A stretch of DNA of 64,000 nt from Isurus oxyrinchus (Eukaryota): assembly GCA_026770705.1 (NCBI GenBank), contig JANJGN010000026.1:38812001-38876000 (forward strand). Reading direction: 5' to 3'. Position numbers and translations under genes: made by a program. Below are positions 4,651-55,466 of this stretch, one piece after another. The notes under the pieces were generated by a model. It had not been told where the DNA came from. It saw only the letters and a program-made list of their open reading frames with translations, and made no database searches. How positions within the stretch are numbered: position 1 is the stretch's first letter; every line of letters starts with the position of its first letter.

Positions 4651-6359
4651 ATCACACAAATGTATATGTTTGACTGTGACAAAATGTATCCTCTCTCTGA
4701 GTCCTCTCTGATAATCTGTCTGTAATTCTTTCCATCCATCCATCCATCAGAATATTATGAGGTGTTGGAGAGATCCTCCAATGAGCCATTGATGCCAACA
4801 GGGTGTCAGAGAAGCTGGATAACTTTTCTTCCCTGAGAGATGGAAACAGTTCACATAGGTTCACAACTTAAAAAATAAAACTGACTCCAGTGCTGTTGCT
4901 GGGTAGATTTGTTATAAATAGGTCTTGTTGACAGTGTTAAGGGTTTGAAGTTGGCTTGCAGCCAAGCGGTCAGTACTGAGGAAACAGATCTTTCATTTAC
5001 TGCACAAACCCGCAGATGCTTCTTGTAAACAACATCGGACATTCGAGCCTCCCTGACTGCAGCTGGCTGGGTTGCTTCCAAATACTGTGTGGGGCAGATT
5101 AGCCTGGATATGAATGAACAAAATGGTTTTAGCCATTCAAACAATAAATGTTTCTGTCGCACACGAAAGGCACAGTTTAAATGGTATTTCATCTAAGGAA
5201 ATATTTGAATGAATGCCATGTTCACTGTGAGATTAAACTCGATCAGAAAATATTAAATTCACCACATATTACTTAATTTATATTATTTCTAAGTAAAGGG
5301 CATTCTAGTTATTAAAGCCGGTTCATTAAGAACTTCATGGAGTGTGAGAGAGGGATGTTGATGGTCCCAATCCCCCAGTCTAATGAGCTGAGTAGAATGG
5401 CAAAAAAAAATTGAAAGGAATTAAATTAAAAGAAAATCATAGAATTGTCTTGAACCTGCAGGAATTCCTTGAATATTCTCCCAGTTGTGCACCTCATTTA
5501 GCCTGTGGGGTCCCTTATACCTCATTAGCACCGTAAATTGTATAGTTTATTTTGTGCTGATTTCGATTATTTAACAGTCCCCCTCATAGCTGCCAATGAG
5601 TGGAGAAATGACCAGTTCATGACCCGCTTCAGTGGAAGATAAAACATTTATTCTTGTGATATTGTTTAATATGCCGCTAAGTCCTGATATCCTGTGTTCC
5701 CAATACCAGTGAATGGTAGACAGCGGGAGGCCAATAAAACTAGCTGCAATGATTTGGATGCTGAAGGATAACTTTTCTGATCTCCGTGTCTGTTCTCATT
5801 CATTAACTTCTTTGTCAAAAGTTGATGTAAAATTTACATTTGCCTGTAAACTTACTGTTGAATTATCAGGCAGGCGGGCTTCTTTTAACGCTAATTTTCA
5901 CAGGGCTGTCTTTGGGTCAGGGACAGATCGAGAAATGCAAAGTGAGGCATTGTATAATGTGAGGAGACTCTTCTTATCTTCGGACACAAATTGTACAGCG
6001 ATAGCCACCCTGGCTGTAAATAAAATCACTTTGTTCATCCACTGCATTTAGTTACATAAATCAATAATAATTCCTAAGACTGATGACGCTTAATTATTGT
6101 AGTGAGATATAGACCCTTTATTCCCTGATAATGTAATATTTTGTTTAGGTTCAACCCCTTAGGAAGTAGTGTAGAAATAAACGGACTTAATTTACAATGG
6201 AATTAGATTTTTATTAATAGATACTCAACTGCAATTTCACCATTAGAACCAATGGATACATTACAATGAATCCATTAAGCCAAGTATCCCAATACAGATA
6301 AAATTTCCATTTTTAGCAATAACCTATTGTAAATATCTGAGTCCATTCTGTTGGGGATG

Positions 6360-6450
6360 TGGAAGGTGGGGCGTGGATCCAGTCGCCGCCTCCACCAGGG
6401 AATCAACAGGCGGCGCCTGGGAACCCGCCCCCTTCTGCCGGGTATTTAAA
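6360..6450 (+). promoter_or_regulatory. Putative VH promoter (GC boxes plus TATA-like box)
   Basis: GC-rich patch with GGGGCGTGG (about 6368), CCCGCCCCC (6424) and TATTTAAA (6443-6450), about 90 bp upstream of the leader ATG. No octamer, consistent with what is known of shark IgH promoters. Confidence 0.55.
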
Positions 6451-6541
6451 TGCCGCTCACTGGGGCCGGAATCCAACAGTCCGGGAGTTGGTTTGTTCAC
6501 TGAGTTCTGGACAGAACCATTTTCCCCAAATGACCAGAAGG

Positions 6542-6587
6542 ATGAGGTCGGCGATTTCTCTCAGTTTGTTGCTGACTTTCTTATCCC
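6542..6587 (+). CDS. IGHV: IgH leader exon (MRSAISLSLLLTFLS-R)
   Basis: Hydrophobic signal peptide, phase-1 donor GTGAGT at 6588, and a second in-frame ATG at 6530. Confidence 0.92.
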
Positions 6588-6715
6588 GTGAGTAGTTTTG
6601 ATTGTCCAAGTCTCTCACTGTTATTGTCTCAGTGTTAGTCTCTCACTGGAATGTTACAGAGTCAGAAATCATTTCACCAGGATTAATCCTCGGGGTTTTT
6701 GATATATTTTTACAG

Positions 6716-7020
6716 GTGTCCTGTCGGAGGTTGTGTTGACTCAGCCAGAGGCAGAGACCGGGCGTCCCGGAGGCTCCCTGAGACTGACCTGTAAAACCAG
6801 CGGCTTCGATCTTGGCAGCTACTGCATGTACTGGGTCCGACAGGTTCCCGGACAGGGGCTGGAGTGGCTGCTTTACTACTATAGTTCATTGGACAACATC
6901 TATGCCCCAGCAATTAAGAATCGATTCACTGCGTCCAAAGACACTTCAAGGAATATCTTCTCCTTGGACATGACGAGCCTGAAGACTGAAGACACCGCCA
7001 TCTATTACTGTGCAAAAGAC
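6716..7020 (+). CDS. IGHV: IgM VH gene segment, open reading frame
   Basis: Acceptor TTTTTACAG ends at 6715. Translation [32 protein letters not shown] has the canonical Cys/Trp/YYC. Confidence 0.97.
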
Positions 7021-7059
7021 CACAGCGAGAGGGACCAGGGCTGGACCCGAACAAGAACA
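7021..7059 (+). other. V 3' recombination signal, 23-bp spacer
   Basis: CACAGCG (7021-7027), 23 bp, ACAAGAACA (7051-7059). Confidence 0.9.
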
Positions 7060-7420
7060 GATCGAGAGAAACTTCCATCGTAACCTAACGGTCAGTACTT
7101 GTTTTAAATGTAATATTAACTGTAATGATCAGAACCCGACAACAAGTTGCTTCTGACAAAAGTAAAACAGCAAATTTAACAGTAAAACCTAACAAACCAA
7201 TTGATATAATGGCTGAGCTTTTGGCTGTGCTTACATTTACTGTTAACAGTTTCCACAATTACAGAACTGGATATAATGTTCATTTTAATATGTCTGATAC
7301 TTGGAGGGGATCACTGTTCATTGCGTTTTGTAAATTGCTGCATAAGTACTAAACTAGATCAGAAGTAAACGTCCATTTGAAGTAAGTATTCAGAGGTAGC
7401 ACTGAACAGAGAGTGGGTGC

Positions 7421-7448
7421 AGTTTTTGTGCGGGTGTATTTCACTGTG
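7421..7448 (+). other. D1 5' RSS, 12-bp spacer
   Basis: AGTTTTTGT (7421-7429), 12 bp, CACTGTG (7442-7448). Confidence 0.92.
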
Positions 7449-7465
7449 ATACTACAGCAGTGGGT
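7449..7465 (+). CDS. IGHD: DH1 segment ATACTACAGCAGTGGGT
   Basis: 17 bp between two perfect heptamers. Open in all three frames (ILQQW / YYSSG / TTAVG). Confidence 0.93.
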
Positions 7466-7503
7466 CACAGTGCTGTGCACAGCGACATCCTCACACAAAA
7501 ACC
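7466..7503 (+). other. D1 3' RSS, 22-bp spacer
   Basis: CACAGTG (7466-7472), 22 bp, ACAAAAACC (7495-7503). The 12/22 flanking matches the known elasmobranch D1 pattern. Confidence 0.92.
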
Positions 7504-7813
7504 TCAGAAGGAGTTTGTTCAAATTGGTGATCACGATCACAACAGGAAAAGTCAAAGAAAATGGGAGCTAAATAAAATAATGGGTATAAGTAATACTGGT
7601 TTGTAAAAATATATATAAGTCTTCCGCTTTGTTTGTGTTTACTGACACGCTAAATCTTCAGAGAGGCTTTTAAAGAACTTCAATCACATTTACAAATATA
7701 ATGACCAGCACAAGCTGAAATATCTCATTGGTTTACTCTTAGGCGAGTCAGGATCAGGTTTTTGAGAGCGCAGTGAGATTAAATCTCTGTATTTACAGTT
7801 AACAGTCTGCCGC

Positions 7814-7841
7814 AGTATTTGACATGGTGTGTCTCACTGTG
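7814..7841 (+). other. 12-bp-spacer RSS in front of the D2-J segment
   Basis: AGTATTTGA (7814-7822), 12 bp CATGGTGTGTCT, CACTGTG (7835-7841). The 23-spacer position reads CAGTCTGCC, which is not a nonamer. Confidence 0.8.
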
Positions 7842-7889
7842 ATATGCTGGACTACTGGGGGAAAGGGACCATGGTGACGGTGACTGCCG
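7842..7889 (+). CDS. IGHJ: JH segment, probably germline-joined D2-J (MLDYWGKGTMVTVTA)
   Basis: WGxG motif, phase-1 donor GTAAGA at 7890. Directly follows a 12-RSS at the expected D2 position. Confidence 0.9.
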
Positions 7890-9664
7890 GTAAGAACCAC
7901 ACATTTATTTAGTAACTGTTTTATTTGAGTCTTTGCTTTTTTTGTCTATTTTAATAATTCATTCAGCCAATGAGACCTGGGTTTGGTGGATTCTGTATGC
8001 AGAATTTTTACAATGTTTCATGTGATTCTGCTGAAATTGAGTTATATAATTCCGCTGTGTCTTGATAAAAAGGTGCTGCTGAGGGATTGAGACCCTGGTT
8101 GTTGTGATTTGGTGTTTATCTGCTGAGGATACTCTGTGGCCAGGCTACTTGAAATATCTAACGTTTGTAAAAACAGTTTGACGTTTCTGCAATGTTTAAT
8201 CTCGGTGACATCTAATCGCTGCGGGTTTTACCATCTGTTGCACAAAGGTGTTTTGCCATCTTTTGCACAAATAGGTTTGAAATCAAACCCAATATTAACA
8301 ACATATGCTTAAGTTTCAGTATTAATTTATTGAACATGTTCCGCCTACCCACAATGCTGTTGACATTATTCCATATTTCTGTTTAGTTTAATTATTCCTT
8401 CATTTGGTGACGAGCGGGTTGTCTGGATTCCATATTGAGAGTTTCTTGCAATGATTACATTGGATTCTGTTGGAAATGTTTGTAGAATTGAGCTGCTTCT
8501 CCATGAAACGGGTTTCAGCCCCCCAGTGATGTGATTTGGTGTTTTTCTGCTGAGGAGATTGTGTATCTAGGTGACTTTGAATAAGTAGAATTTATGAAAT
8601 CATTTGGCGGTTCTGCATTGTTTCTGCTTTGTTTAAACTCGGTGATATTGAGCGGTTACACGTTTTGCGATTGAATCGAAGTAGCCTCCGCGTTTGTATC
8701 TGCTTGAAGCGCGATTGTAGGCAGAAAACAAACAGGCTTCAGAAATGGGCAAAAAAACATTTAAAGATGTGTTAGAACATTTTGTCTTTATTTTAAGTGG
8801 TAATTGCAGAATAAACTAAACCATGGATTATGACGCTCATTCTGAACATAATTCGTTACTGCAATCAGAAACTATACAATTCCCAAGTTTTCAAATTGTA
8901 GAGTAAAATTAATGCAATTCAAACAATTATAATGCAGTAATATTTCTCCATATTGACGGAACATTTTTCATATTAATCTAATTGATCATTAATCGCCTTT
9001 CACAATTCTGCTGTCTCTGCGCACAATTAACACGATTGGGAAAGTTTTTAGGATGGAAACATTTTGTGATTATGCATGAAAAAATCTCAGTAAGAATATA
9101 CTGACTCTACAGAATTGTTCAGTTTCAAAAGAGATTTTGAATTACTTTTTTTATGTCCATGATAACATTTGCATTGACTTAAAGAGGAGTTTGATATTGC
9201 AGTTTGGCAATATGGCTATTCGGTTATTACATTCTTTCTGTGAAGCCGTAACCACATTATTCCTTCAATGTCATTGGGAGTTGGCTAGCGAGAGAATTGT
9301 CACTTATCTAATTTTAAACAGTTTAGTGGGGGGGGGGGGGGGGGGGGGGGTGGGGGTTTAATTCGCTGGCAGTAAAATAATTGTTCTTACATTTTTTGAA
9401 CTGCAGGAAGGTGCAGACCGCATATAAATAGAGACTGACAAGTAAAAGCTTGAAACTCGAACAGATTAATTTAATGGCAAATATTAGTATTCGTTTTGAA
9501 CTTAATAACAACATTCTGTCTCCCATAGCTGTGCTGTACACAGGATAGAATTATAGGAGAAGAACAGATTATATCTGAGATTCATGCATAATTCTTATTA
9601 AATATTAAATTGAAGAACAATATTTGCGCCCTCCATTCAGTCAAATCATGGCTGATCTACCTCG

Positions 9665-10530
9665 ACACACTCAGTGTCTTTACCACACACCCTCACTCGC
9701 TCACTCTCACTGTCACACACACTTTCTCTCACATACATGCACACACACTCTCTCACGCAATCTCTCTGACAGACATACACTCTCTCTTTCTCTCTCTGTC
9801 ACACACACACACTCACTTTCTCTCTCACACACACAAACTCCCTTTAACACGCACACACTGTCTCTCACACATTGTCTCTCTTTTTCACACACACTCTCAC
9901 ACAGACACATTCTCTCATACACATACTCTCTCAACTGCGCACACACATACACACTCTCACCCTCACACATGCATGCACTCTTTCTTTCTCACACATGCAC
10001 TCTCACACATGCCATTCTCTCTCACACACACACACGCACACCCACTCTCTCTCACACATACATGCACCCTTTCTCCCACACATATACACTCTCTCAATTC
10101 TCCCCCTCTCTCACACACAGACACATAACACTGTCTCACACACACACATCTTCATTCTCTCTCTCTCACGCACACAGAAACACAAACATATTCCCTTTCT
10201 CACACAGAAACACTTCTTCTCACACACGGACTCTCTCTCATTATCTCTTTCTCTCTCTCTGACCCACACACTGGCCCTCTCCTTCACACACTCTCTCCCA
10301 CACACACACACACACACACACAATCGCTCTCTCTCTCTTCCATATGCTCTCTCTCTCACACACACATTTCTTTATCTCACTCTCACACTTATACTCCCTA
10401 TGACACTCTCCCTCTCTCACATACACTCACAAGCACCCACACACACACTCTCTCCCACCCACACTCTTAGTCTTTTTGTCTCTCTGTCTCTCTCTCTCTC
10501 TTTCTCACGCAGACACACACACCCATTCTC
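9665..10530. repeat. Degenerate (CA)n/(CT)n low-complexity tract
   Basis: Mixed CA/CT dinucleotides. The His/Thr/Leu/Ser ORFs here are artefacts. Confidence 0.9.
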
Positions 10531-11129
10531 AAACACAGAAATGGGCTGAAAATGTTAATTTCAGAAAGAAAACCCGCTAAGCTGCAGGCATGTTTATTGT
10601 TCCATTTCTGATGTCTTTTTGTGTAAAATGAAATTACACAAGTGACATCACTATATATGTGGAGAATTTCCAAGTGTTGAGCCAAACACAAAGAAACAAG
10701 AAAAAGGGAAGGATGTGATGGAGACCACGGCCGCCTGGATCCCCAATACTGGTGCACACTTGGTGCAAGATGCCTGCACGGCCCATCCTGGTTTTGCTGT
10801 AACATTCCCCTCCAGCCCCCTCAGTCTGCCTATTCACGCACTGACACGGGTTTCTCAAAGAAAGGCATCAGCATTAAAGCAGCTGGCCAGCGATCTACAC
10901 TGCTGCCTGACTTTACACAGCCAGTGTTACTGAAAGCTGATCAATATGGAGAATTGGGACAAGTTCGACTGAGAGGAAGAGGAGGGGATGGAGGTGGAGG
11001 TGGAGGTGGAGACGAATGGAGGAGCCCCCAGCTCGGCTGTGGACAACAGGCAACGGAAAGCTGAGCCGGCGCAGAAAATCATCTGGAAAAACATCACCAT
11101 GATGAGCCTGCAGCACCTGGGCACCCTCA

Positions 11130-11720
11130 CTACCCACAATCACTCACCTTCACTCACCATCACTCACACTCACTCAATCACCCTCACTCAGCCACCCTCA
11201 CTCACTCACCCTCACTCACCCTCACTCACACTCACTCAATCATCCTCACTCACCCACCCTCACTCACTCACCATCACTCAATCTCACTCCCTCACCTATT
11301 CTCACTCAGCCTCACCAATTCACCCAGCTTCACCCACCCTCATCCACTCATCATTAATTACTTTAACCTTCACTCACTCACCCTCACTCACTCACCCTCA
11401 CTTACCCTCCCATCCTCACTCACGTACCTTCAGTGACACTCAATAACTCATCCACCCGCACTCACACACCCACTCACCCTCACTCACATACCCACCCTCA
11501 CATACCCACCAACCCTCACTCAGCCACTCGACTACCCTCATTCAATCACCCACGCTCACTCACCCACATTCAGACACCCACCCACGCCCACTCAGCACCC
11601 ACCCTCACTCACGCCTTCACTCACCACCCACCCTCACTCACTCTGCCACCCTACCTTGCTCTGTCACTCAGCCACCCTCACTTTGTTAAACATGCACACG
11701 CTCACTCACTCGATCACTTT
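11130..11720. repeat. C-rich (CACT/CACCCT)n low-complexity tract
   Basis: Repeated CACTCACCCTCACTCA. Confidence 0.85.
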
Positions 11721-11829
11721 CCATAAATCGGTGTATAGGAGGGCGGGAACTGCGGGGAACAGAGACCTGGAAGCGAGGCCTGAGGCCTAGCAGTGCCAGA
11801 AAGTGAAACATGGCTGAAGGGAGCGACGA

Positions 11830-13270
11830 GCTTCATTGGAAAGTGCAGGGAGGCGGGGGGAAAGCTCGGAGAGCCTGGGGGAAAGGGCAGGGAGGCGGGG
11901 GAAATGGCAGAGAGCCGGGGGGGGGGGTGGGGTGGTGTTGGGGGGGAAGGGTAAGGAGCCGGGGAAAAGGGCAGGGATCCAGTGGAAAGTGCTTTGGGAT
12001 GGGGCAAAGGTCAGCAAGCAGGGGGAAAGCTCAGTGAGCCAGTGGAAGGCCAGAGAGGCAGAGGAGGAGGAAGGGCAGAGAGACGATGGAAAGAGCAGAG
12101 AGGTGGGGGGGGGAAAGGGCAGAGAGGCGAGGGAAGGGCATAGAGGTGGGACAGGGAAAGGGCAGAGAGGCGGAAGGAGGAAAGGGCAGAGAGATGGGAG
12201 GGGGAAAGGGCGGAGAGGCAGGAGGGCAAAGAGGTGGAGGGTTGACAGGGGAGAGAAGCGGGGAGTGGGACAGGCAGAGAGGTGAGGGGAAACGGCAGTG
12301 AGGTGGCAGGAGGAAAGGGCAGGAATGTGGGTGGGGGAAATAGCAGAGAGGCGGCGGGGGAAAGGGCAGAGAGGAGGGTGGGCAGAGAGGCAGGGGGGAA
12401 AGGGCGGATAGCAGGGGAGGAAGGGCAGAGAGGAGGGAGAGCAAAGAGGCAGAGGGGGGAAGGACAGAGAGGTGACGGAAAGGGTAGATAGTCGATGGAA
12501 AAGGCAGCGAGCTGGGGTAAGGGCAGAGAGGCGAGGGTGTAAGGGCAGAGAGGCGGGGTGTAAGGGCAGAGAGGTGGGAGAGGGAAAGGGCACAGAGGTG
12601 GGAGTGGGAAAGGGCAGAGAGGCGGGTGGGAAAGGGCAGAGGGGTGGATGAGGGAAAGGATAGAGAGGCAGAGGAAGGAAGGGCAGAGAGGTGATTGAAA
12701 GGGCAGCGAGCCAGGGGAACGGGAAAAGAGCAGTGGAAAAGGTCAGAGCTGGGTGAAAGCACAGAGCGCGGTGAAATGTGTGCAGAGACCTGGGGGAGAA
12801 AGGGCAGAGAAGTGATGGGGAAAGGGCAGAGAGGCGGCAGATGTAAAGGGCTGAGAGGTGGGAGTGGAAATGGGCCGAGAGGCAGGAGGGGGAAAGGGCA
12901 CAGATGCAGGAGGGGAAAAGGGCAGAGAGATGTGTGGGAAAGGGCAGAGAGGAGGGGGAAAGGGGACAGAGACGGGAGAGGGAAAGGGGCAGAAAGACGG
13001 GGGTGAAGGGCAGAGCGGTGGGTGGGGAAGGGCAGAGCGGCACGGGGGTCTGGGCAGAGAAGCAGGGGGTGGGACATGCAGAGAGCTGGGGGAAAAGTGA
13101 GCGAGCCAGTGGAAAAGGTCAGAGATCCGGGCGAAAGTGAATAGAACCGTGGAGTAAGTGCAGAGAGCTGGGGTACAAAGGGCAGAGTTGGGGGGGGGAG
13201 GCGGGTGGGCAGGGCAGGGAGGTGGGGGTGGGGGAAGGACTGAGAGCCGGGCAAAAGCTGGGAGAGCCGG
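11830..13270 (+). repeat. G-rich degenerate tandem repeat (AAGGGCAGAGAGG core) in the J-C intron
   Basis: Dozens of GGGCAGAGAGG units about 20-25 bp apart, with strong G/purine skew on the + strand. Confidence 0.9.
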
Positions 13271-15873: not shown

Positions 15874-16173
15874 TGACACCGTCTTCGCCCACTCTCTACA
15901 GCCTGGTCTCCTCCTGTCAGCAACACAACACCGACGGCTCCGTCACCTACGGCTGTTTGGCGATGGACTACTCCCCAGAAATCACCAGCCTGACCTGGAA
16001 GAAAGATGGGCAGCAGATCACCACTGGATTTAAGACTTACCCATCAGTGAGAAACCAGAAGGGAACCTACACTCTGAGCAACCAGTTAACCATCACCGAG
16101 TCAGAGGGGGAATGCAGCATAATCAAGTGTGAGGTTCAACACAGTGTCTCAGACAAGAGCGTTAAAATGCCAT
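15874..16173 (+). CDS. IGHM: IgM C-mu1 exon
   Basis: Acceptor TTCTTTCCCAG, translation [30 protein letters not shown], phase-1 donor GTAAGT at 16174. Confidence 0.95.
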
Positions 16174-16372: not shown

Positions 16373-16681
16373 GTACTGACTTACCTCCAACTGTTCTCCT
16401 CACCGTGAGTTCCCGGGAAGAAATCACAACCAACAAATTTGCAACCACCGTCTGTTCAATCATCGATCTCTGTTCAAAGTCAATCACCGTGAAGTGGCTG
16501 AAGAATGGACAACCCATGAATTCAGGAATTGTCACCTCTCCTGTCTTTGAAGTGAACGGGAACTTCTCGGCGACCAGTTGGCTGAAAGTCTCCGCTGGGG
16601 AATGGTTCAGCGACGCAGTGTATACCTGTCAGGTCACTCACCAAGGGCTCACCCAAAGTCGAAACGCCACCAAGTGTGAGG
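16373..16681 (+). CDS. IGHM: IgM C-mu2 exon
   Basis: Acceptor TTTTTTGAAG, translation PPTVLLT..CSII..WLKNG..YTCQVTH, donor GTAAGA at 16682. Confidence 0.94.
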
Positions 16682-17305: not shown

Positions 17306-17617
17306 ATGATCACCACTGCCCCAACGATCCCACAATTACTCTACTGCCACCTCCAATAGAACAGGTCTTACTAGAGGCGACCGTGTCCTTAACCTGCATC
17401 GTTTCTAATGCTCCTTTTGGAGTCCTCGTGTCCTGGACACAAGAGAAGAAGCCTTTGAAATCAGAGATCGCCGTCCAACCAGGAGAGGATCCCGACAGCG
17501 TTGTCAGCAACATAAACATCTCGACACAAGCCTGGCTGAGTGGGGTTGAGTTCAACTGTGTGGTGAGCCATCAGGATCTGCCGACTCCTTTAAGAAATTC
17601 CATCCACAAGGAACAAG
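17306..17617 (+). CDS. IGHM: IgM C-mu3 exon with non-canonical (TT) splice donor
   Basis: Acceptor CTCACAG, translation [35 protein letters not shown]. The expected phase-1 boundary is followed by TTGAGC. Confidence 0.88.
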
Positions 17618-18330: not shown

Positions 18331-18660
18331 TTAAAGAACCGCGGGAACCGTCCGTGTCTGTCCTCCTGCCCTCGGCAGAACATGTCTCCGCTCAGGGATT
18401 CGTCTCCCTCAGTTGCTTAGTGACAGGTTTCTCCCCGCGAGAGATTTTCATCAAGTGGATCGTCAATGACAAGCCGGTGGCTCCCGGAAACTACAAGAAC
18501 ACCGAGGTAGTGGCGGAGAACGGCAATCGCTCCTTCTTCACGTACAGCCTGTTATCCATTGCAGCGGAGGAGTGGGCCAGTGGCGCTTCTTACTCCTGTG
18601 TGGTGGGACATGAAGCGATCCCCTTGAAGATCATCAACAGAACGGTTGATAAATCCAGCG
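18331..18660 (+). CDS. IGHM: IgM C-mu4 exon
   Basis: Acceptor TTTTCTGCAG (phase 1), translation [31 protein letters not shown]. Internal donor G/GTAAAC at 18661 for the TM splice. Confidence 0.95.
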
Positions 18661-18722
18661 GTAAACCGAGCTTTGTAAATATTTCCCTTGCACTGATGGA
18701 CATCGTTAATTCATGTCAATGA
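18661..18722 (+). CDS. IGHM: IgM secretory tailpiece [20 protein letters not shown]
   Basis: N-glycosylation sequon NIS, penultimate Cys, stop TGA at 18720-18722. Confidence 0.95.
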
Positions 18723-21672: not shown

Positions 21673-21800
21673 ATTCCACAGACCGCATATGGATTGAAGA
21701 CTCTGAGGATGATAACGGCAACATCTGGACAACCACTTCCACATTCATCATCCTCTTCTTCCTGAGCATTTTCTACAGCGCTGCCGTCACTCTGGCGAAG
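21673..21800 (+). CDS. IGHM: IgM transmembrane exon TM1
   Basis: DSTDRIWIEDSEDDNGNIWTTTSTFIILFFLSIFYSAAVTLAK contains the conserved antigen-receptor TM motif. Donor GTGAGA at 21801. A second in-frame acceptor ends at 21681. Confidence 0.94.
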
Positions 21801-34300: not shown

Positions 34301-34429
34301 CTGTTTGTTTCATCTCAAAAACCTCAAACGTAACCTGAAGAAATACACTTCATTTGGTGACGAAAGGATACAAGGTAAAGCAAACCGACTGCCAGAATAT
34401 TAAATTTCATCCGAGCCATAAAGATTGTT

Positions 34430-35365
34430 CGGGTGTAGGATTCGTAAGTTTGCAGATGACACAAAGATTGGCCAGGTGGTTAACAGTGAGGTTGAGTGTC
34501 TTGGGCGACAGGAAGATATAGACGGGATAGTCAAATGGGCAGCCAAGTGGCAGATGGAATTTAACCCTGAAAAGTGTGAGGTGATACCCTTTGGAAGAAG
34601 TAATTTGATAAGAAAGTATTCAATGAATGGCATGACACCAGGAAGTTCTGAGGAACAAAGGGACCTCGGCGTGTGTGTCCATAGATCTCTGAAAGCGGAG
34701 GGGCATGTTAGTGACGTGGTGAAAAAGGCATATGGGACACTTGCCTTTATCAATCAAGGCATAGATTACAAAAGTAGGGAGGTCATGTTGGAGTTATATA
34801 GAACCTTGGTGAGGCCACAGGTGGAGTACTGTGTGCAGTTCTGGTCACCACATTATAGGAAGGATGTGATTGCACTGGAGGGGGAGCAGAGGAGATTCAC
34901 GAGGATGTTGCCTGGGATGAAACATTTAAGTTATGAAGAGTGGTTGGATAGACTTGGATTGTTTTTATTGGAGCAGAGAAGATTGAGGGACGACCTGATC
35001 GAGGTATACAAGATTATGAGGGGCATGGACAGGGTGGATAGGGAGCAGCTGTTCCCCTTAGTTGAAGGGTCAATCATGAGGGGACACAAGTTCAAGGTGA
35101 GGGGCAGGAGGTTTGGGGGGGATGTGAGGAAAAGCTTTTTTACCCAGAGGGTGGTGACAGTCTGGAATGCGCTGCCTGGGCGGGTGGTGGAGGTGGGTTG
35201 CCTCACATCCTTTAAAAAGTACCTGGATGAGCACTTGGCACATCATAACATTCAAGGCTATGGGCCAAGTGCTGGTAAATGGAATTAGGTAGGTAGGTCA
35301 CGTGTTTCTCACTCATGCAGACTCGATGTGCTGAAGGGCCTCTTCTGCATTGTGTGATTCTGTGA
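34430..35365 (+). mobile_element. Young 5'-truncated CR1 LINE with intact RT C-terminal ORF (287 aa)
   Basis: ORF 34425-35288 KFADDTK..LVRPQVEYCVQFWSP. 3' tail TGTGATTCTGTGAT. Confidence 0.93.
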
Positions 35366-36564: not shown

Positions 36565-37322
36565 ATGGAGAAACCATGGAAATGTGGGGACTGTGAGAAG
36601 GGATTCAATTATCCATCCAAGCTAGAAACTCATCGACGCAGTCACACTGGGGAGAGACCGTTCCTCTGTTCTGATTGCGGGAAAGGAGTCACTCAGTTAT
36701 CTACCTTGTTAACACACCAGTGAGTTCACACTGGGGAGAGACCATTCACCTGCTCCGTGTGTGGGAAGGACTTTACTAAATCATCTACCCTGACTGAACA
36801 CTAGCGAGTTCACACCGGGGAGAGGCCATTCAGTTGATCTCACTGCAGGAAGAGATTTGGACGGTCATCCAATCTCACTGAACATCTCCGTATTCACACT
36901 GGAGAGAGACCGTTCACCTGCCCCGTGTGTGGGAGGAGATTCACTTGTTTAACCAACCTCACATCACACCAACTTCTTCATACTGATCAGAGACCTTTTC
37001 AATGTTCAGACTGTGATTCTGGCTTTAAAAGCACAAGGGATCTGCTGATACACCAACGCAGCCACACCGGGGAGAGGCCGCTCATCTGCTCCGAGTGTGG
37101 GAAGGGATTCACTCACGCATCCAACCTGCTGGCACACCAGCGAGGCCACACCGGGGAGAGGCCATTCACCTGCTCCAAGTGTGGGAAGAGATTTCGTCGC
37201 TCATCCGATGTTCAGAGTCACCAGTGAGTTCACATGGGGAGGATCCGTTCAGCTGCTCTGTTTGTGGGTAGGGATTCACTCACTCATCCACCCTGCTGAG
37301 ATACCAGCGAGTCCACAAGTGA
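36565..37322 (+). pseudogene. C2H2 zinc-finger pseudogene
   Basis: [21 protein letters not shown] repeats, with in-frame stops at 36721, 36802, 36835 and 37225. Confidence 0.9.
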
Positions 37323-38904
37323 CTCCAGGGGTTGGATTCTGTTGTTAATGACATCCAGGAATGAACCATGTTCATCCTGATAGTTGGACTTTGTTTCTGC
37401 TGATGTTAATAACCCCATATAATGGTGTGAATTTAATGTTGTGACAAGTGCCAAATAAATCAGCATTATTTCAAACAAATAGTATGTTGTGCGCTTGATT
37501 TCTCTAACAGTGACCATAGTCCCACAGCATCTCTCCTACCTTCGATGTGTGAAGAGACCATCACACCTATAAACCTGGTTTAAATTTAAATCTGAATCCA
37601 CTCAGCAAATTAATTTAACAAAAGGTGAAGAGCAAACCGATCACATCAAATAATTGGCAAAAAGCCAGAGGGGAGATGAGAAAAGATGTTTTACTGAGCG
37701 AGTTGTGATTTGGAACACACTGCCTGAAAGGTGAACGCAGACTCTATAGGAGCTTTCAAAAGAGAATTGAATCTCTAGCTACAGGGCTCTGGGGAAAGGG
37801 CAGGGGAGTGGGACTAATTGGCAGCTCTTTGAAAGATGACCTGGCTCTTTATGCAGTTCTATATTGACAAGTGACAGTCTGATGTCCAACTCCCCAGGAA
37901 TAAGGAACGATCTTGGCTCTCTGAAAACCCCTTCAGCTCTTTGTAAGTGTCTTTCAAACGCTGACAGATTCTTTCTTTCTTTTGAAATTCCATTTCCATG
38001 TTAGGGGATGCAGACAGTGCTGGACATAGAGGGAGCAGCAAACCTGGTTCAGAATGGACACGCTTGGGTTCGTGTTTGGCCTGGCTTTCTGCTGAGCATG
38101 TGCTGGGGCCCCGTGGGCCTTCACTGCTCAGGGACATTTCTGAGTATGTCATAGGCACCATTAGATATAGGAGGAGGCCATTCAGCCCCTCAAACCTGCT
38201 CCACCAGTTAGGTCAGGGTTGATTTCTATCCGAACTCCATTGACCTGCCTTTTAAGATGATGTTGTCCCCTTGTTCTCAATTCCCCCACCAGAGGAAATA
38301 GCTTCTCTACTTTGACCCGATTGGCTCATCAAGCAGATTTTGATCATTTCCCCTTAATCCAGAACAACTGTATAAGTTTATCTTTACATTCCAGGAGCAG
38401 CAGTACTCCTGGAATTGTTTATCACAAGGAATTCACTACATCCGTGATCTGGCCCTGCTCAAACCATAACCACAAGGATATCTGTGCATTGTTCTGAGTG
38501 TGAGCACAAGGCTGTGTCACTATCACACACAGATACCGTTTCCTTGGTTCACATCTCCATACAAAGACCAGCTCTTTACGCATATCCCCTTTCTACACAA
38601 TTGCAGGAGACATGAGCAAGGATGTGAGGCTCATTAATATACACCCATATTTCATGACAGCAAAGGTTCCACTGGGACAAAGGTTCAGTCATTTTCCATC
38701 ACAGGCACATACAGAGCAGTACATGAGCTCACTGAAAGTTTAAGAGACTTTCATCAGCCTGCAGGCTCCTGTTAAATACAGAGCAGTACAGGAGCACATT
38801 GACAGTCTAACAGAGTCTCAACAGCCTGCAGGCTCCTCTCCAATACATTTACTGAGTGGATTTCAATTTAAACCAGGTTTTCAGATGTGATGCTCTAGTC
38901 ACAC

Positions 38905-39430
38905 ATTGGTCGCCACATTACCAGAAGGATATGGAGGCGTTGGAGAGGGTGCAGAGGACGTTTACCAGGATGCTGCCTGGTCTGGATGTTATTAGCTATG
39001 AGGAGGGGTTGGAGAAACTCGGATTGTTTTCACTAGAGCAACGGAGATTGAGGGATGACTTGATAGAAGTTTACAAAATTATGAGTGGCATGGACACAGT
39101 AGATAGTCAGAAGCTTTTTCCCAGGTGGAAGAGTCAATTACTAGGGGACATAGATTTAAGGTGAAAGGAGTAAACTTTAGAGGAGATGTGTGGGGCAAGT
39201 TTTTTACGCAGAGGGTAGTGAGTGTCTGGAATTCGCTGCCAGAGGAGGTGGTGGAAACAGGTACGATAGTGGTGTTTAAGAGGCAGTTTGACAAATATAT
39301 GAATAGATGGGAATAGAGGGATACGGACACCAGAAATGCAAAATGTTTTAGTTGACAGGCAATGTGATCGGCACAGGCTTGGAGGGCCGAAGGGCCTGTT
39401 CCTGTGCTGTACTTTTCTTTGTTCTTTGAG
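38905..39430 (+). mobile_element. CR1 LINE 3' fragment
   Basis: WSPHYQKD..LERVQRTFTRMLPG. Confidence 0.88.
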
Positions 39431-39704
39431 ATGCTATGGTACACACACTAAGTCCAGTAGCTGAACTAATTAACAGACTGAGTTTGGGTTTCCTGATCCA
39501 GTGCATGTTACTGATACCTTCCCTGGATCTCAAGGCTAAGACAGACACTCGGGAAGGTATGGGGAGCTGGGACTTGTCTATGAGAGTAACTGAAGGTCTG
39601 AGAACTGAAATAATCTAAAGTTAGAAAGGAGAAAAGGTTCAGTCCTGGACGTGATTCTTAGCAGCAACAACCGATTCTAACTTTGTCAGTAACATGTGAA
39701 GCCA

Positions 39705-40123
39705 CTAATGTTTCAGCAGGCTGTAAGACTGAGTAAATTGCTTCTCACATACAGAGCAGGTGAACGGTTTTTCTCCAGTGTGAACTCGCTGGTGTCTCAG
39801 CAGGCGGGATGAATCAATGAATCCTTTCCCACACTCAGAGCAGGTGAACAGCTTCTTCCCGCTGTGAGTACATTGATGCCTCAGCAGGCCGAACGAATGA
39901 GCGAATCCCTTCCCACACTCAGAACAGAGGAACGGCTCTCCCTGGTGAGGGTGCGTTGGTGTTTCAGCAGGTCATTGCTTCTTTTAAAGCTCTTTCTGCA
40001 TTCAGAACATTGAAAAGGTCTCTTATCAGTGTGAACGCGTTGGTGTTCAGTGCAGTAGGACAACTGAGCAAATCTCTTGCTACACACAGAGCAGGTGAAC
40101 AGCCTGTCCTCAGTGTGAGTGCG
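39705..40123 (-). pseudogene. Disabled 3' zinc fingers beyond the stop of the 40124-41245 ORF
   Basis: The same frame continues after TGA (RTHTEDRLFTCSVC..), then a 1-bp frameshift near 39940. Confidence 0.8.
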
Positions 40124-41245
40124 TCAGTGTCTCTGGAGGCTGGATGACTCAGTGAAACCCTTCCCACACACAGGGCATGTGAACCACCTCTCCCCAGTGT
40201 GAATAGTCCAGTGTCTCAGCAGGTGTTGTAAACAAGTAAATCTCTTCTTGCACACGGGGCAAAGGTACGGCCTCTCCCCAGTGTGAACACGCTCGTGTAT
40301 CACAAGGTGGGACAAACGAGGGAAACTCTTCCCACACATGGAACAGAGGAACGGCCTCTCCCCGGTGTGAACTCGCTGGTGCTTCAGCAGATAGCAGGAT
40401 CGAGTGAATCCCTTCCCACACAGCGAGCAAGTGAATGGCTTCTCCCCAGTGTGCACCCACTGGTGCTTCAGCAGGTCAGCTGGCTGAACGAATCCCTTCC
40501 TACCTGCGGAGGTGAACGGCCTCTCTCCAGTGTGAATACTCTCGTGTGTCAAAAGGTGTGAAAATCGAGTGAATGTCTTCCCACACACAGAGCAGAGGAA
40601 TGGCCTCTCCCTGGTGTGAACACGCTTGTGTGTCAGAAGGTGAATTGAATGAGTGAATCTCTTCCCACACACGGAGCAGGGGAACGGCCTCTCCCCAGTG
40701 TGAATGCACCGTTGTCTCAGCAAATTAATGCTTCTTTTGAAGGTCTTCTCACATTCAGTACATTTAAAAGGTCTCTTTTCTGAGTGGACCAATTGGTGCT
40801 CAGTGTAGTGGAAGGACTGAGCGAATCTCTTCCCACATTGGGAGCAGCTGAACGGCCTGTCCTTGGTGTGAACATGCTGGTGCTCAGTGAGATGCACTGA
40901 CTTGCTGAATGACTCCCCACATTGGGAGCAGCTGAACGGCCTCTCGTGTGTGTGAAGGAGCTGGTGCTCCACGAGGCAGGAGGACAGCCTGAACCTCTTC
41001 CCACAGTGGGAGCAGCTGAACGATCTCTCGTCAGTGTGAACTTGCTGGTGTTGGGCCAGTTCCTTGGAGATTTCAAAGCTTTTCTCAGAGTCAGAGTATT
41101 GAAGAGGATCCTCATAAATGTGATCAAGCTGGTGTGCCAGCCGGTTGGATGAACACATGAATTTCTTCCCACACACTGAGCAGGTGAACGGTCTCTCGCT
41201 ATTGTGAGTTCGCTGTCGTGTCAGCATGTTTACCAGCTCCATCAA
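40124..41245 (-). CDS. Tandem C2H2 zinc-finger protein (about 12 fingers), truncated or pseudogenising
   Basis: 373-aa ORF of CxxC..HxxxH/TGERPF repeats. Upstream acceptor near 41417. Confidence 0.8.
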   Translation of the reverse strand: MMELVNMLTRQRTHNSERPFTCSVCGKKFMCSSNRLAHQLDHIYEDPLQYSDSEKSFEISKELAQHQQVHTDERSFSCSHCGKRFRLSSCLVEHQLLHTHERPFSCSQCGESFSKSVHLTEHQHVHTKDRPFSCSQCGKRFAQSFHYTEHQLVHSEKRPFKCTECEKTFKRSINLLRQRCIHTGERPFPCSVCGKRFTHSIHLLTHKRVHTRERPFLCSVCGKTFTRFSHLLTHESIHTGERPFTSAGRKGFVQPADLLKHQWVHTGEKPFTCSLCGKGFTRSCYLLKHQRVHTGERPFLCSMCGKSFPRLSHLVIHERVHTGERPYLCPVCKKRFTCLQHLLRHWTIHTGERWFTCPVCGKGFTESSSLQRH

Positions 41246-41894
41246 TCCCTTCCTACAGGAGGAGCAGGGAAGCAGCCTCTCACCAGTTTCCAGCTGAAGC
41301 AGTCAATTAAATCCTTGCAGATGTATGAATCTTCAGATTCCAATGAACCGATTGACCCTGTCAGACGTGAGGTTTGGTTTGCTTTATCTGACTGCAAATC
41401 CTCCTCCTCTATTATCCTGTAAAGTAAGTTACAAACAGGCCATTCAGTCTATCCAGTTTGTACTGGAGTTTCTAGTCCACACAAGTCTCCCCCATTCTGC
41501 CAATCCCATCTCAGGCTTTCAGCTCATCTTTCTAATCCCTTTTCTCCCATGTTCTCATCTAGTTTCCTTCTAAAAATATCTGTTATTTTTCTTGACCACA
41601 TCCAGTAGTACTGAGTTCCACATTCTCATAGCTGTCTGAGGAACCATATATCTCCTGTGTTCTTCTTGGATTTATTTGTGTCTATTGTGTATTCATGACC
41701 CCCAGTATTGGTTAGACCTGCAAGTGGAAACATTCTGTCCACGTCTACCTGCCCAACACAATCAGAATTTAAAGACCTAGTTGACAAACATATCTCTCGA
41801 TTTGCTGTGTGTAAATCTTTCCCATTTAACCCCCGGAAAGGGAGTTTGCAAAATCCATCCCTGTCAGTCCAGGATAGGAATTCACCACATTCTC

Positions 41895-45202: not shown

Positions 45203-46672
45203 ATCACAGAATCATACAGTGCAGAAGAGGCCCTTTGGCCCATCAAGTCTGCACCGACACGTGAGAAACACGTGACCTACCTACCTAATCCCATTTATCA
45301 GCACTTGGCCCATTGCCTTGAATGTTATGACGTGCCAAGTGCTCATCTGGGTACTTTTTAAAGGATGTTAGGCAACCTGCCTCCACCACCCTCCCAGGCA
45401 ACGCATTCCAGACCGTCACCACCCTCTGGGTAAAAATGTTTTTCTTCACATTCCCCCTAGACCTCCTGCCCCTCACCTTGAACTTATGTCCCCTCGTGAC
45501 TGACCTTTGAACTAAGGGGAACAGCTGCTCCCTATCCACCCTGTCCGTGCCCCTCATAATCTTGTACACTCGATAAGGTGGCCCCTCAGTCTTCTCTGCT
45601 CCAACGAAAACAACCCAAGTCTATCCAACCTCTCTTCATAACTTAAATGTTTCATCCTAGGCAACATCCTGGTGAATCTCTTCTGCACCCCGTCCAGTGC
45701 AATCAGATCCTTCCTATAATGTGGCAACAGAACTGCACACAGCTGTGGCCTCACTAAGGTTCTATACAACTCCAACATGACCTCCCTACTTTTGTAATCT
45801 ATGCCTCGATTGATGAAGGCAAGCATCCCATATGCCTTTTTCACCATCCCACTAACATGCCCCTGTGCCTTCAAAGATCTATGGACACACATGCCAAGGT
45901 CCCTTTGTTCCTCAGAACTTCCTAGTGTGACGCAGTTCATTGAATACTTCTTTGTGAAATTACTCCTTCCAAAGTGTATCACCTCGCACTTTTCAGGGTT
46001 AAATTCCATCTGCCACTTATCTGCCCATTTGACCATCCCGTCTATATCTTCCTGTAGTCCAAGACACTCAACCTCACTTTTAACTACCCAGCCAATCTTT
46101 GTGTCATCCACAAACTTACTAAACTTACCCCCTACATAGTCATCTATGTCATTTATATAAATCATGAATAATAGGGGACCCAGCACAGATCCCTGTGGTA
46201 CGCCACTGGACCTTGACTTCCAGTCACTAAAGCATCCTTCTGTCATCACCCTTTGTCTTCTACAACTAAGCCAATTTTGAATCCACCTTATCAAATTACC
46301 CTGTATCCTATGTGTATTTGCCTTCTTTATAAGTCTCCCATGTGGAACCTTGTCAAAGGTGTTGCTGAAATCCATATAAACTGCATCAACTACACTACCC
46401 TCATTGACACACCTGGACACCTCCTCAAAAAATTCAATCAAATTTGTTTGACATGACGTCCCTCTGACAAAGCCATGCTAACTATCCCTGATCAAACCTT
46501 GCTTCTCCACGTAGAGATAGGCACTCTCCTCCAGAGCTTTCTCCAATAGTTTCCCTACCACTGACGTGATATTCACTAGCCTGTAGTTCCCTGGCTTATC
46601 TCTACAACCCTTCTTATATAGCAGAACCACATTAGCTGTTCTCCAGTCCTCTGGCACCACCCCCGTGGCCAT
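45203..46672 (-). mobile_element. Young CR1 LINE, same subfamily as 34430-35365
   Basis: ORF 45554-46441 with SGVPQGSVLGPLLF and YINDID. 3' UTR nearly identical to 35281-35365. Confidence 0.93.
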
Positions 46673-49055: not shown

Positions 49056-49284
49056 NNNNNNNNNNNNNNNNNNNNNNNNNNNNNNNNNNNNNNNNNNNNN
49101 NNNNNNNNNNNNNNNNNNNNNNNNNNNNNNNNNNNNNNNNNNNNNNNNNNNNNNNNNNNNNNNNNNNNNNNNNNNNNNNNNNNNNNNNNNNNNNNNNNNN
49201 NNNNNNNNNNNNNNNNNNNNNNNNNNNNNNNNNNNNNNNNNNNNNNNNNNNNNNNNNNNNNNNNNNNNNNNNNNNNNNNNNNNN
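49056..49284. other. Assembly gap
   Basis: Run of N. Confidence 1.
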
Positions 49285-54799: not shown

Positions 54800-55078
54800 A
54801 TGGCTGCTCCAATCATGGCTGCCCTGAATGACTCGCAGATGAGGGAGCTAGGGCACTGGAGCGACTCGACCGGTGAGCAGTAGAGGCATTGCTACAACTA
54901 CTACGTGGCATTGCTCAGCCTCCTGATCTTCGTGGTGGTGTTTGGCAATGTGCTGGTGTGCATGGCAGTGCCCAGCGAGATGGCACTGCAGACCACCACC
55001 AACTACCTCATCATCAGCCTGGCTGTGACAGACCTACTGGTGGCCATGCTGGTGATGCCCTGGGTCATCTATCTAGAG
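54800..55078 (+). pseudogene. drd2: Dopamine D2-like receptor, first coding exon (TM1-TM2), with premature stop
   Basis: [58 protein letters not shown]. In-frame TAG at 54881-54883. Donor reads GCAAAA. Confidence 0.85.
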
Positions 55079-55337
55079 GCAAAACCGTTAGTTCAGTCCC
55101 GCGTATCGATAGGTGGGAGGGCCCCGAAGGGCGTTGGGCCTTGCAGCTACCGACATTACGCCTCAACAATCCCACCCACCGCCAAAGAGGTCCTATGTCC
55201 TTTTCCCACTTCCCTTCCTGGAGCCAGTCACTTGCGCATCAGTCACAGCCAGAACAAAGTCTCTCTTCTGGTCATCCATTTCGATACCAGGTGACTGGTG
55301 AACAACACATGACTGAACGTGACCATATAGAAACATA

Positions 55338-55466
55338 GGCCAGGATTTTATGGCCCCTCCTGCCTGGCGGGATATTACGATCCCGCCGAACTAAATGGAG
55401 ATTTAAATGGCTCGCCACTTCCTCTGGGGGAGAGACACGCTGCGGTGGGGCCATAAAATCCTGGCT
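55338..55466. mobile_element. MITE with 19-bp terminal inverted repeats (PIF/Harbinger-like)
   Basis: GCCAGGATTTTATGGCCCC (55339-55357) and GGGGCCATAAAATCCTGGC (55447-55465), with ATA on both flanks. Confidence 0.75.

Follow-up and report, generated by a model that had tools for sequence, protein, structure and literature searches.

An IgM heavy-chain cluster of Isurus oxyrinchus with a probable germline join of D2 to J

Introduction

The locus analyzed here raises the question of whether a shark IgM heavy-chain cluster can be inherited with D2 already joined to J, while V and D1 are still split. Germline-joined shark antibody genes have been known since the 1980s, from the horn shark (1988 onward) and from the nurse shark (IgM1gj). 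Partly or fully joined shark IgH clusters (VD-J, VD-DJ, VDJ) are textbook knowledge (PMC5192425; PMC4279169), and germline D2-J joins, in the form of VD-DJ, appear in a review's list of such genes (PMC5192425). In the germline-joined NS4 light-chain genes of the nurse shark, the joined ends are trimmed and traces of TdT activity are few (Lee et al, 2000; PMC2193156). In nurse-shark lymphocytes, V-D-DJ occurs as a somatic intermediate (Malecek et al, 2008; PMC2435157).

An earlier note on this DNA had described a V segment with a 23-RSS, a D1 segment with a 12- and a 22-RSS, and then a 12-RSS followed by a D2-like stretch running directly into JH. All of these elements were found where the note had placed them. 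What the last of them represents, and whether it is part of the inherited genome, is addressed below.

Results

Layout of the cluster

The window, that is, the whole stretch of 64 kb, contains one complete IgM heavy-chain cluster, which lies on the plus strand. It consists of a leader, V, D1, a J-like piece, four Cμ exons, the secretory tail and a transmembrane (TM) exon; no V, D or J besides the cluster's own was found in the 64-kb window. The features, with the evidence for each, are as follows.

6530..6587, plus strand: VH leader exon, ATG at 6530; from the sequence, and from the splice 6587 to 6716 with GT..AG ends in an RNA contig of run X15
6716..7020, plus strand: VH exon, open, with both conserved Cys, ending in ...YYCAKD; from the sequence and Pfam V-set
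7021..7059, plus strand: V 23-RSS, CACAGCG at 7021-7027, 23-nt spacer, ACAAGAACA at 7051-7059 (nonamer 7/9); hand count
7421..7448, plus strand: D1 5′ 12-RSS, AGTTTTTGT at 7421-7429 (8/9), 12-nt spacer, CACTGTG at 7442-7448; from the sequence and the nonamer score
7449..7465, plus strand: D1 coding, 17 nt; aligns to nurse-shark Group 2 D1 with no mismatch and one 3-nt gap
7466..7503, plus strand: D1 3′ 22-RSS, perfect CACAGTG at 7466-7472, 22-nt spacer, ACAAAAACC at 7495-7503 (9/9); from the sequence and the score
7504..7813, plus strand: D1-D2 intersegment spacer; related contigs are collinear from the V RSS or D1 to 7833-7851
7814..7841, plus strand: putative retained D2 5′ 12-RSS, AGTATTTGA at 7814-7822 (6/9), 12-nt spacer at 7823-7834, perfect CACTGTG at 7835-7841; from the sequence and the score
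7842..7851, plus strand: probable D2-derived coding remnant, with 7848-7851 (TGGA) in common with J; left-flank contigs reach 7851 and then read TGGCACAGC
7848..7889, plus strand: JH-derived coding (..DYWGKGTMVTVTA), donor GT at 7890; 13 ordinary-J contigs in 4 runs
15874..16173, plus strand: Cμ1 exon; C1-set
16373..16681, plus strand: Cμ2 exon; C1-set
17306..17617, plus strand: Cμ3 exon, expected donor reading G|TTGAGC; C1-set, boundary taken from relatives (P0028 ...SIRKEK|A...)
18331..18722, plus strand: Cμ4 exon and μ secretory tail; C1-set and sequence
21682..21800, plus strand: μ transmembrane exon 1; from the sequence

The VH exon matched the Pfam V-set with an E value of 6.5e-18 and was 83% identical to a V of Scyliorhinus torazame and 77% identical to Heterodontus HV01. 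All four C exons were assigned to the C1-set by Pfam, Cμ4 being 79-89% identical to shark μ sequences, and the Cμ exons, the secretory tail and the TM exons were all present and all open. The J-Cμ1 intron spans ∼8 kb; the splice from J to Cμ1 was present in an RNA contig, and that of the leader in RNA contigs as well. As in other shark IgM clusters, the V-set exon with its leader is followed by a 23-RSS, and D1, flanked by a 5′ 12-RSS and a 3′ 22/23-RSS, lies ∼400 bp from V. In place of a free D2 (12/12) and a free J with a 23-RSS, the cluster has one fused piece behind a single 12-RSS.

Several further elements were observed in the window. Upstream of the V leader (6300-6530), a TATA-like TATTTAAAT is present at ∼6443-6451; the exact octamer ATGCAAAT is absent from this region, the only two in the window lying at 9167 and 57411. 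Within the J-Cμ intron, positions 9700-13190 consist of strand-asymmetric repeats, C/CA-rich at 9700-11641 and followed at 11838-13187 by a 1.35-kb G-rich tandem array of ∼60 copies of a ∼24-nt unit, so that the GC skew turns from −0.35 to +0.48. By analogy, the position and G-richness of the array may be likened to those of a switch region. The flanks (34400-35300, 36900-41250, 45280-46450 and 54890-55340) contain reverse-transcriptase fragments, C2H2 zinc-finger ORFs on both strands and a short GPCR-like ORF, and a gap of 229 N is located at 49056-49284. A protein labelled Salmonella enterica (P0031; 112 aa, from a 478-bp contig) was 88% identical to part of the window's Cμ4; the bacterial assembly was almost certainly contaminated with shark DNA.

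The third recombination signal

Every perfect heptamer in the window was scored for a nonamer at set spacings. For the signal preceding the fused piece, the nonamer score was 6/9 at a spacer of 12, and 3, 2 and 3 of 9 at spacers of 22, 23 and 24, respectively; reading it as a 23-RSS was therefore ruled out, and the absence of a 23-RSS at this position is clear. Nonamer scores of at least 6/9 occur at 1.4% of window positions, which makes the assignment as a 12-RSS only moderately significant from the sequence alone; among the 14 perfect heptamers outside the Ig cluster, two also reached at least 6/9 at one of six spacings. Judged by its own letters, the third signal is thus a plausible 12-RSS. 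Its distance from D1 is consistent with this position in the cluster: D1 and the fused piece are 376 bp apart, which fits the usual segment spacing of roughly 400 bp in shark clusters (PMC2435157).

The earlier note had also claimed that a D2 3′ RSS, a D2-J spacer and a J 23-RSS were lacking. This was borne out, because neither a D2 3′ RSS, nor a J 23-RSS, nor a second J core was found anywhere in the 64-kb window. GGTTTTTGA at 7757-7765 was also considered as a signal and rejected; there is no heptamer 12 or 23 bp away, and in the alignments of related contigs it is part of ordinary spacer.

Origin of the fused piece

The coding piece at 7842-7889 comprises 48 nt (ATATGCTGGACTACTGGGG...GCCG), is in frame (..MLDYWGKGTMVTVTA) and is followed by GTAAGA, a canonical donor. 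Its first ten letters, ATATGCTGGA, had been taken for D2 in the earlier note. From their sequence alone, this assignment had to be rejected, because they align about equally well to D2 and, with one 3-nt gap, to the heads of J segments. Because of this ambiguity, the argument for a D2-J join rests on the flanks, and these do favor D2.

Contigs (Logan) from four public runs, of which X2, X6 and X3 are probably DNA and X15 is RNA, were placed on positions 6300-8300 at 80% likeness. An ordinary J was present in 13 contigs from all four runs, and these matched the window only from 7848/7850 rightwards. To the left of that point, they carry the heptamer CACTGTG (once CACAGTG), then 6-8 nt (ACGATA, ACGCTA, ACGGGA, ACTATA or ACTAACTT), then (T)GGACTACTGG, also written (T)GGACTACTGGGG. 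The flank upstream of this heptamer (...GGGAATGTAA) is unlike window positions 7818-7834; a J-type flank, or a reinserted copy of the excised spacer, was sought across the window and not found.

Other contigs matched the left side. Record 6 of X15 is collinear with window positions 7052-7833, record 12 of X2 matches 7495-7851 and then stops matching, and records 20 and 21 of X3 begin in D1 and are collinear with the left side of the window. Two short X3 contigs, which are the only evidence for the tail of D2, pass 7851 and continue with TGGCACAGC, made up of a further three coding letters and a 3′ heptamer, leaving a 9-letter loose end. Since left-flank contigs run on into TGG and a heptamer, the left flank of the window precedes a free D2 in relatives; by these X3 contigs, that D2 is ∼13 nt long and starts like 7842-7851. 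A comparison of flanks like that proposed in the earlier note, performed here on contigs of related sharks, thus showed the left flank to behave like the D1-D2 spacer plus the D2 5′ RSS, and a match to sequence upstream of J, the pattern that would have spoken against a join, was not seen.

In the nurse-shark Group 2 germline, D1 reads ATACTACAGTGGGT, D2 ACATACTGGGATAG and JH ACTATTTTGRTTACTGG (PMC2435157 Fig. S1). The J heads of the contigs were identical to the nurse-shark JH at 14 of 17 positions, and the D2 deduced here aligned to the nurse-shark D2 in 10 of 14 columns. When metagenome contigs were scanned for exact matches to the heptamer followed by the D2 head, 25 were obtained, all of them chance matches in unrelated flanking sequence.

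These data bear on whether D2 was ever part of the fused piece. In a native single-D cluster, a signal with a 12-bp spacer would precede an ordinary J whose head has acquired small indels (ATA + CTG + GGAC...), and D2 would never have been fused. The 48-nt piece is indeed exactly as long as the ordinary J of the contigs, and a single 3-nt gap suffices to align its head with J heads. Upstream of 7848, however, J-bearing contigs do not fit the window, relatives have D2 following the same flank, and the 12-nt spacer of the third signal resembles that of the D1 5′ signal (7 of 12 letters in common). A single-D origin is thus considered very unlikely, and the agreement in length is a coincidence of trimming.

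The flanks likewise bear on descent from a cluster with inverted spacers (12-D2-23 / 12-J), either by a D2-J join within it or by loss of D2 that left a 12-RSS against J. A join between D2(23) and (12)J would yield the same product, but differs from the origin preferred here in the ancestor only, and none of the features of the window requires it. Furthermore, the flank of the retained signal is collinear with D1-containing contigs, as would be expected of the D2 5′ signal and not of an inverted D2 3′ signal. Such an ancestry therefore appears highly improbable.

The breakpoint

Because J-type contigs fit from 7848/7850 and D2-type contigs up to 7851, the breakpoint of the D2-J join lies within TGGA (7848-7851). 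The earlier note had suggested a microhomology of GA; letters are indeed shared at the break, but they comprise TGGA rather than GA only. The two coding segments lie directly against each other, with the intervening spacer and both of its signals missing. Up to the trimmed coding ends, the flanks run in parallel with those of split relatives, as judged from contigs of related animals, and each letter from 7842 to 7889 can be traced to a D2 or J found in relatives, which leaves little or no N. With respect to the segments of the relatives, the breakpoints are situated ∼3 nt inside the 3′ end of D2 and 6-10 nt inside the 5′ end of J.

The most likely origin is a coding joint between D2 and J, lacking N letters, that RAG made in the germ line. 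The D2 3′ 12-RSS and the J 23-RSS would have been the sites of RAG cleavage in a germ-line cell; after trimming, by ∼3 nt at D2 and by 6-10 nt at J, the coding ends would have been ligated at up to 4 nt of common sequence (TGGA) with no N added, and the ∼400-bp spacer and both signals would have been lost. A RAG-independent deletion of ∼400 bp, by replication slippage or microhomology-mediated repair at TGGA, could also have removed the tail of D2, both signals and the head of J, and the 4 nt in common at the breakpoint agree with it. Sequence by itself does not separate the two mechanisms. Still, breakpoints at ∼3 and 6-10 nt from two heptamers are the signature of RAG cleavage with trimming and would be rare for a random deletion, which renders this origin extremely unlikely.

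Rearranged relatives

Among the contigs were also some with other junctions. One type, present in X2, X3 and X6, runs from a D1-type 12-RSS heptamer (7448) through 23 letters (CGGGCACAAGTGCTCTCGATC[G/T]C) into J at 7850. That an almost identical 7448/7850 junction recurs in three runs of different samples points to a fused, V-DDJ-like cluster that is shared and inherited in those sharks. Three further junctions were each represented by a single contig: V joined via 33 letters to J in X2 (7011/7853; VDDJ-like), V joined to D1 with the 3′ flank of D1 intact in X3 (7015/7458; VD-), and D1 joined via 7 letters to J in X6 (7461/7848).

Germline status of the join

The best of the four runs contained 36% of the sampled window words, and no contig bridging the join (7835-7860) was present among those listed from these runs. 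Every contig of all four runs differed from the window at many places (6600, 6624, 7266, 7374, 7494, 7616, 7643), which indicates that the contigs originate from paralogues or related animals and not from the window cluster. Since none of the four runs shows the exact cluster, the assembly is the sole source for both the join and its germline status.

A somatic D2-J rearrangement, carried by a lymphocyte clone in the sequenced tissue and not inherited, might in principle have entered the assembly. V-D-DJ intermediates occur in shark lymphocytes and thymocytes (PMC2435157), and the join was seen in none of the independent runs. Somatic joints, however, are clonally diverse and usually contain N; published somatic DJ joints of sharks do so, for example, that of clone JS23DD (PMC2435157), whereas the joint in the window is without N. 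Moreover, an assembly consensus requires agreement of most reads at a locus, and the numerous private substitutions and the broken splice donor of the window cluster are what an old, diverged copy would be expected to show. For a somatic origin, a clonal joint without N would have had to win the consensus, which is unlikely.

Taken together, the locus is best explained as a shark IgM minilocus of the type V-D1-D2-J-Cμ whose D2 and J have become united through a V(D)J-type coding joint, now carried in the assembled genome, resulting in the layout V(23) / 12-D1-22 / 12-[D2J]; we assign this explanation a probability of ∼0.8.

The Cμ3 splice donor

At the end of Cμ3, the donor reads CAAG|TTGAGC (17617/17618), with TT for the expected GT (G|TT versus G|GT); it is the one splice site of the cluster that is not canonical. 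Reading through this site adds VER and a stop, and an alternative donor, CAA|GT, at the end of Cμ3 shifts the frame of Cμ4. The explanation is either decay of the copy or the loss of a G from a GG run in the assembly. As far as can be read from its letters, the window copy may be a non-functional or decaying pseudogene from which a normal μ chain is not made, and the Cμ3 donor makes functional predictions for the cluster uncertain.

Discussion

Like the IgH clusters of cartilaginous fish that are joined in the germ line, the window cluster probably has a V(D)J-type coding joint as a fixed part of an Ig locus of the cluster type, and a D2-J joint is part of the known VD-DJ. In the window, however, only D2 and J are fused, while V and D1 are split and have intact signals (V-D-DJ). 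A literature search, which did not cover the 1988 horn-shark paper, returned no paper on V-D-DJ as a germline type, nor was a paper on catshark IgH annotation found in it. The layout with only D2 and J fused adds one to the layouts known among germline-joined shark Ig genes; a germline D2-J joint itself is already on record.

With the NS4 genes, the window joint has in common trimmed ends and an N region that is small or lacking, and probably also an origin from split paralogues through a RAG-like activity in the germ line. The NS4 genes represent a VJ join of a light chain, the inheritance of which was demonstrated in erythrocyte DNA of many animals, whereas the join in the window is known from the assembly. 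The somatic V-D-DJ intermediates share the configuration of the window and the retained D2 5′ 12-RSS, but they are clonally diverse and contain N, whereas the window joint lies in a genome assembly and is without N.

The layout had been likened to that of TCR β. The order of spacer types is formally the same as in the TCR β/δ grammar (V23 / 12-D-23 / 12-J), but the resemblance ends there: the gene encodes IgM (four Cμ exons, μ tail, TM) with no TCR constant region, and the 12-signal before "J", having a D2-like flank, is that of D2 and not one borne by J. Restrictions on joining other than the 12/23 rule are not known for it.

If the cluster were to rearrange, the retained D2 5′ 12-RSS could pair with the D1 22-RSS or the V 23-RSS. 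Owing to this signal, the number of joins required of a lymphocyte would fall from three to two (V-D1 and D1-DJ) or to one. The earlier note had argued the same, and the count holds; the direct join of V to DJ is, however, not special to this cluster, since joining V directly to D2 obeys the 12/23 rule in ordinary clusters too. One N-region junction and ∼13 templated letters would be lost. The predicted CDR3s would thereby be somewhat shorter on average, as had been proposed, yet diverse; to call them semi-invariant is an overstatement, because the V-D1 and D1-DJ junctions remain, with trimming and N. Their 3′ end, said to be fixed as (M)LDYW, would be expected to have this form, but only unless the head of DJ is trimmed.

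A more far-reaching possibility is that the genome contains a heritable family of V-D-DJ clusters still competent for recombination. Together with V-DD-J, V-DDJ-like, VD- and inverted-spacer clusters, such a family would document, in readable form, that RAG has acted repeatedly in germ cells, and V-D-DJ would represent a TCR-β-like, two-step grammar of IgH, perhaps preferred early in life. At present, we regard this as speculative and rather doubtful.

For the immunity of the animal, the effect of the join would be modest, with one of three junctions fixed, and possibly nil for this copy if the defect in Cμ3 is real. The main evidence from nature for RAG acting in germ cells, and thereby reshaping antigen-receptor loci, comes from germline-joined shark Ig genes; the joint in the window is cleanly readable, with its trimming, four common letters and no N. 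Once compiled, the full set of layouts in one chromosome-level genome could serve to estimate the frequency and the order of such joins.
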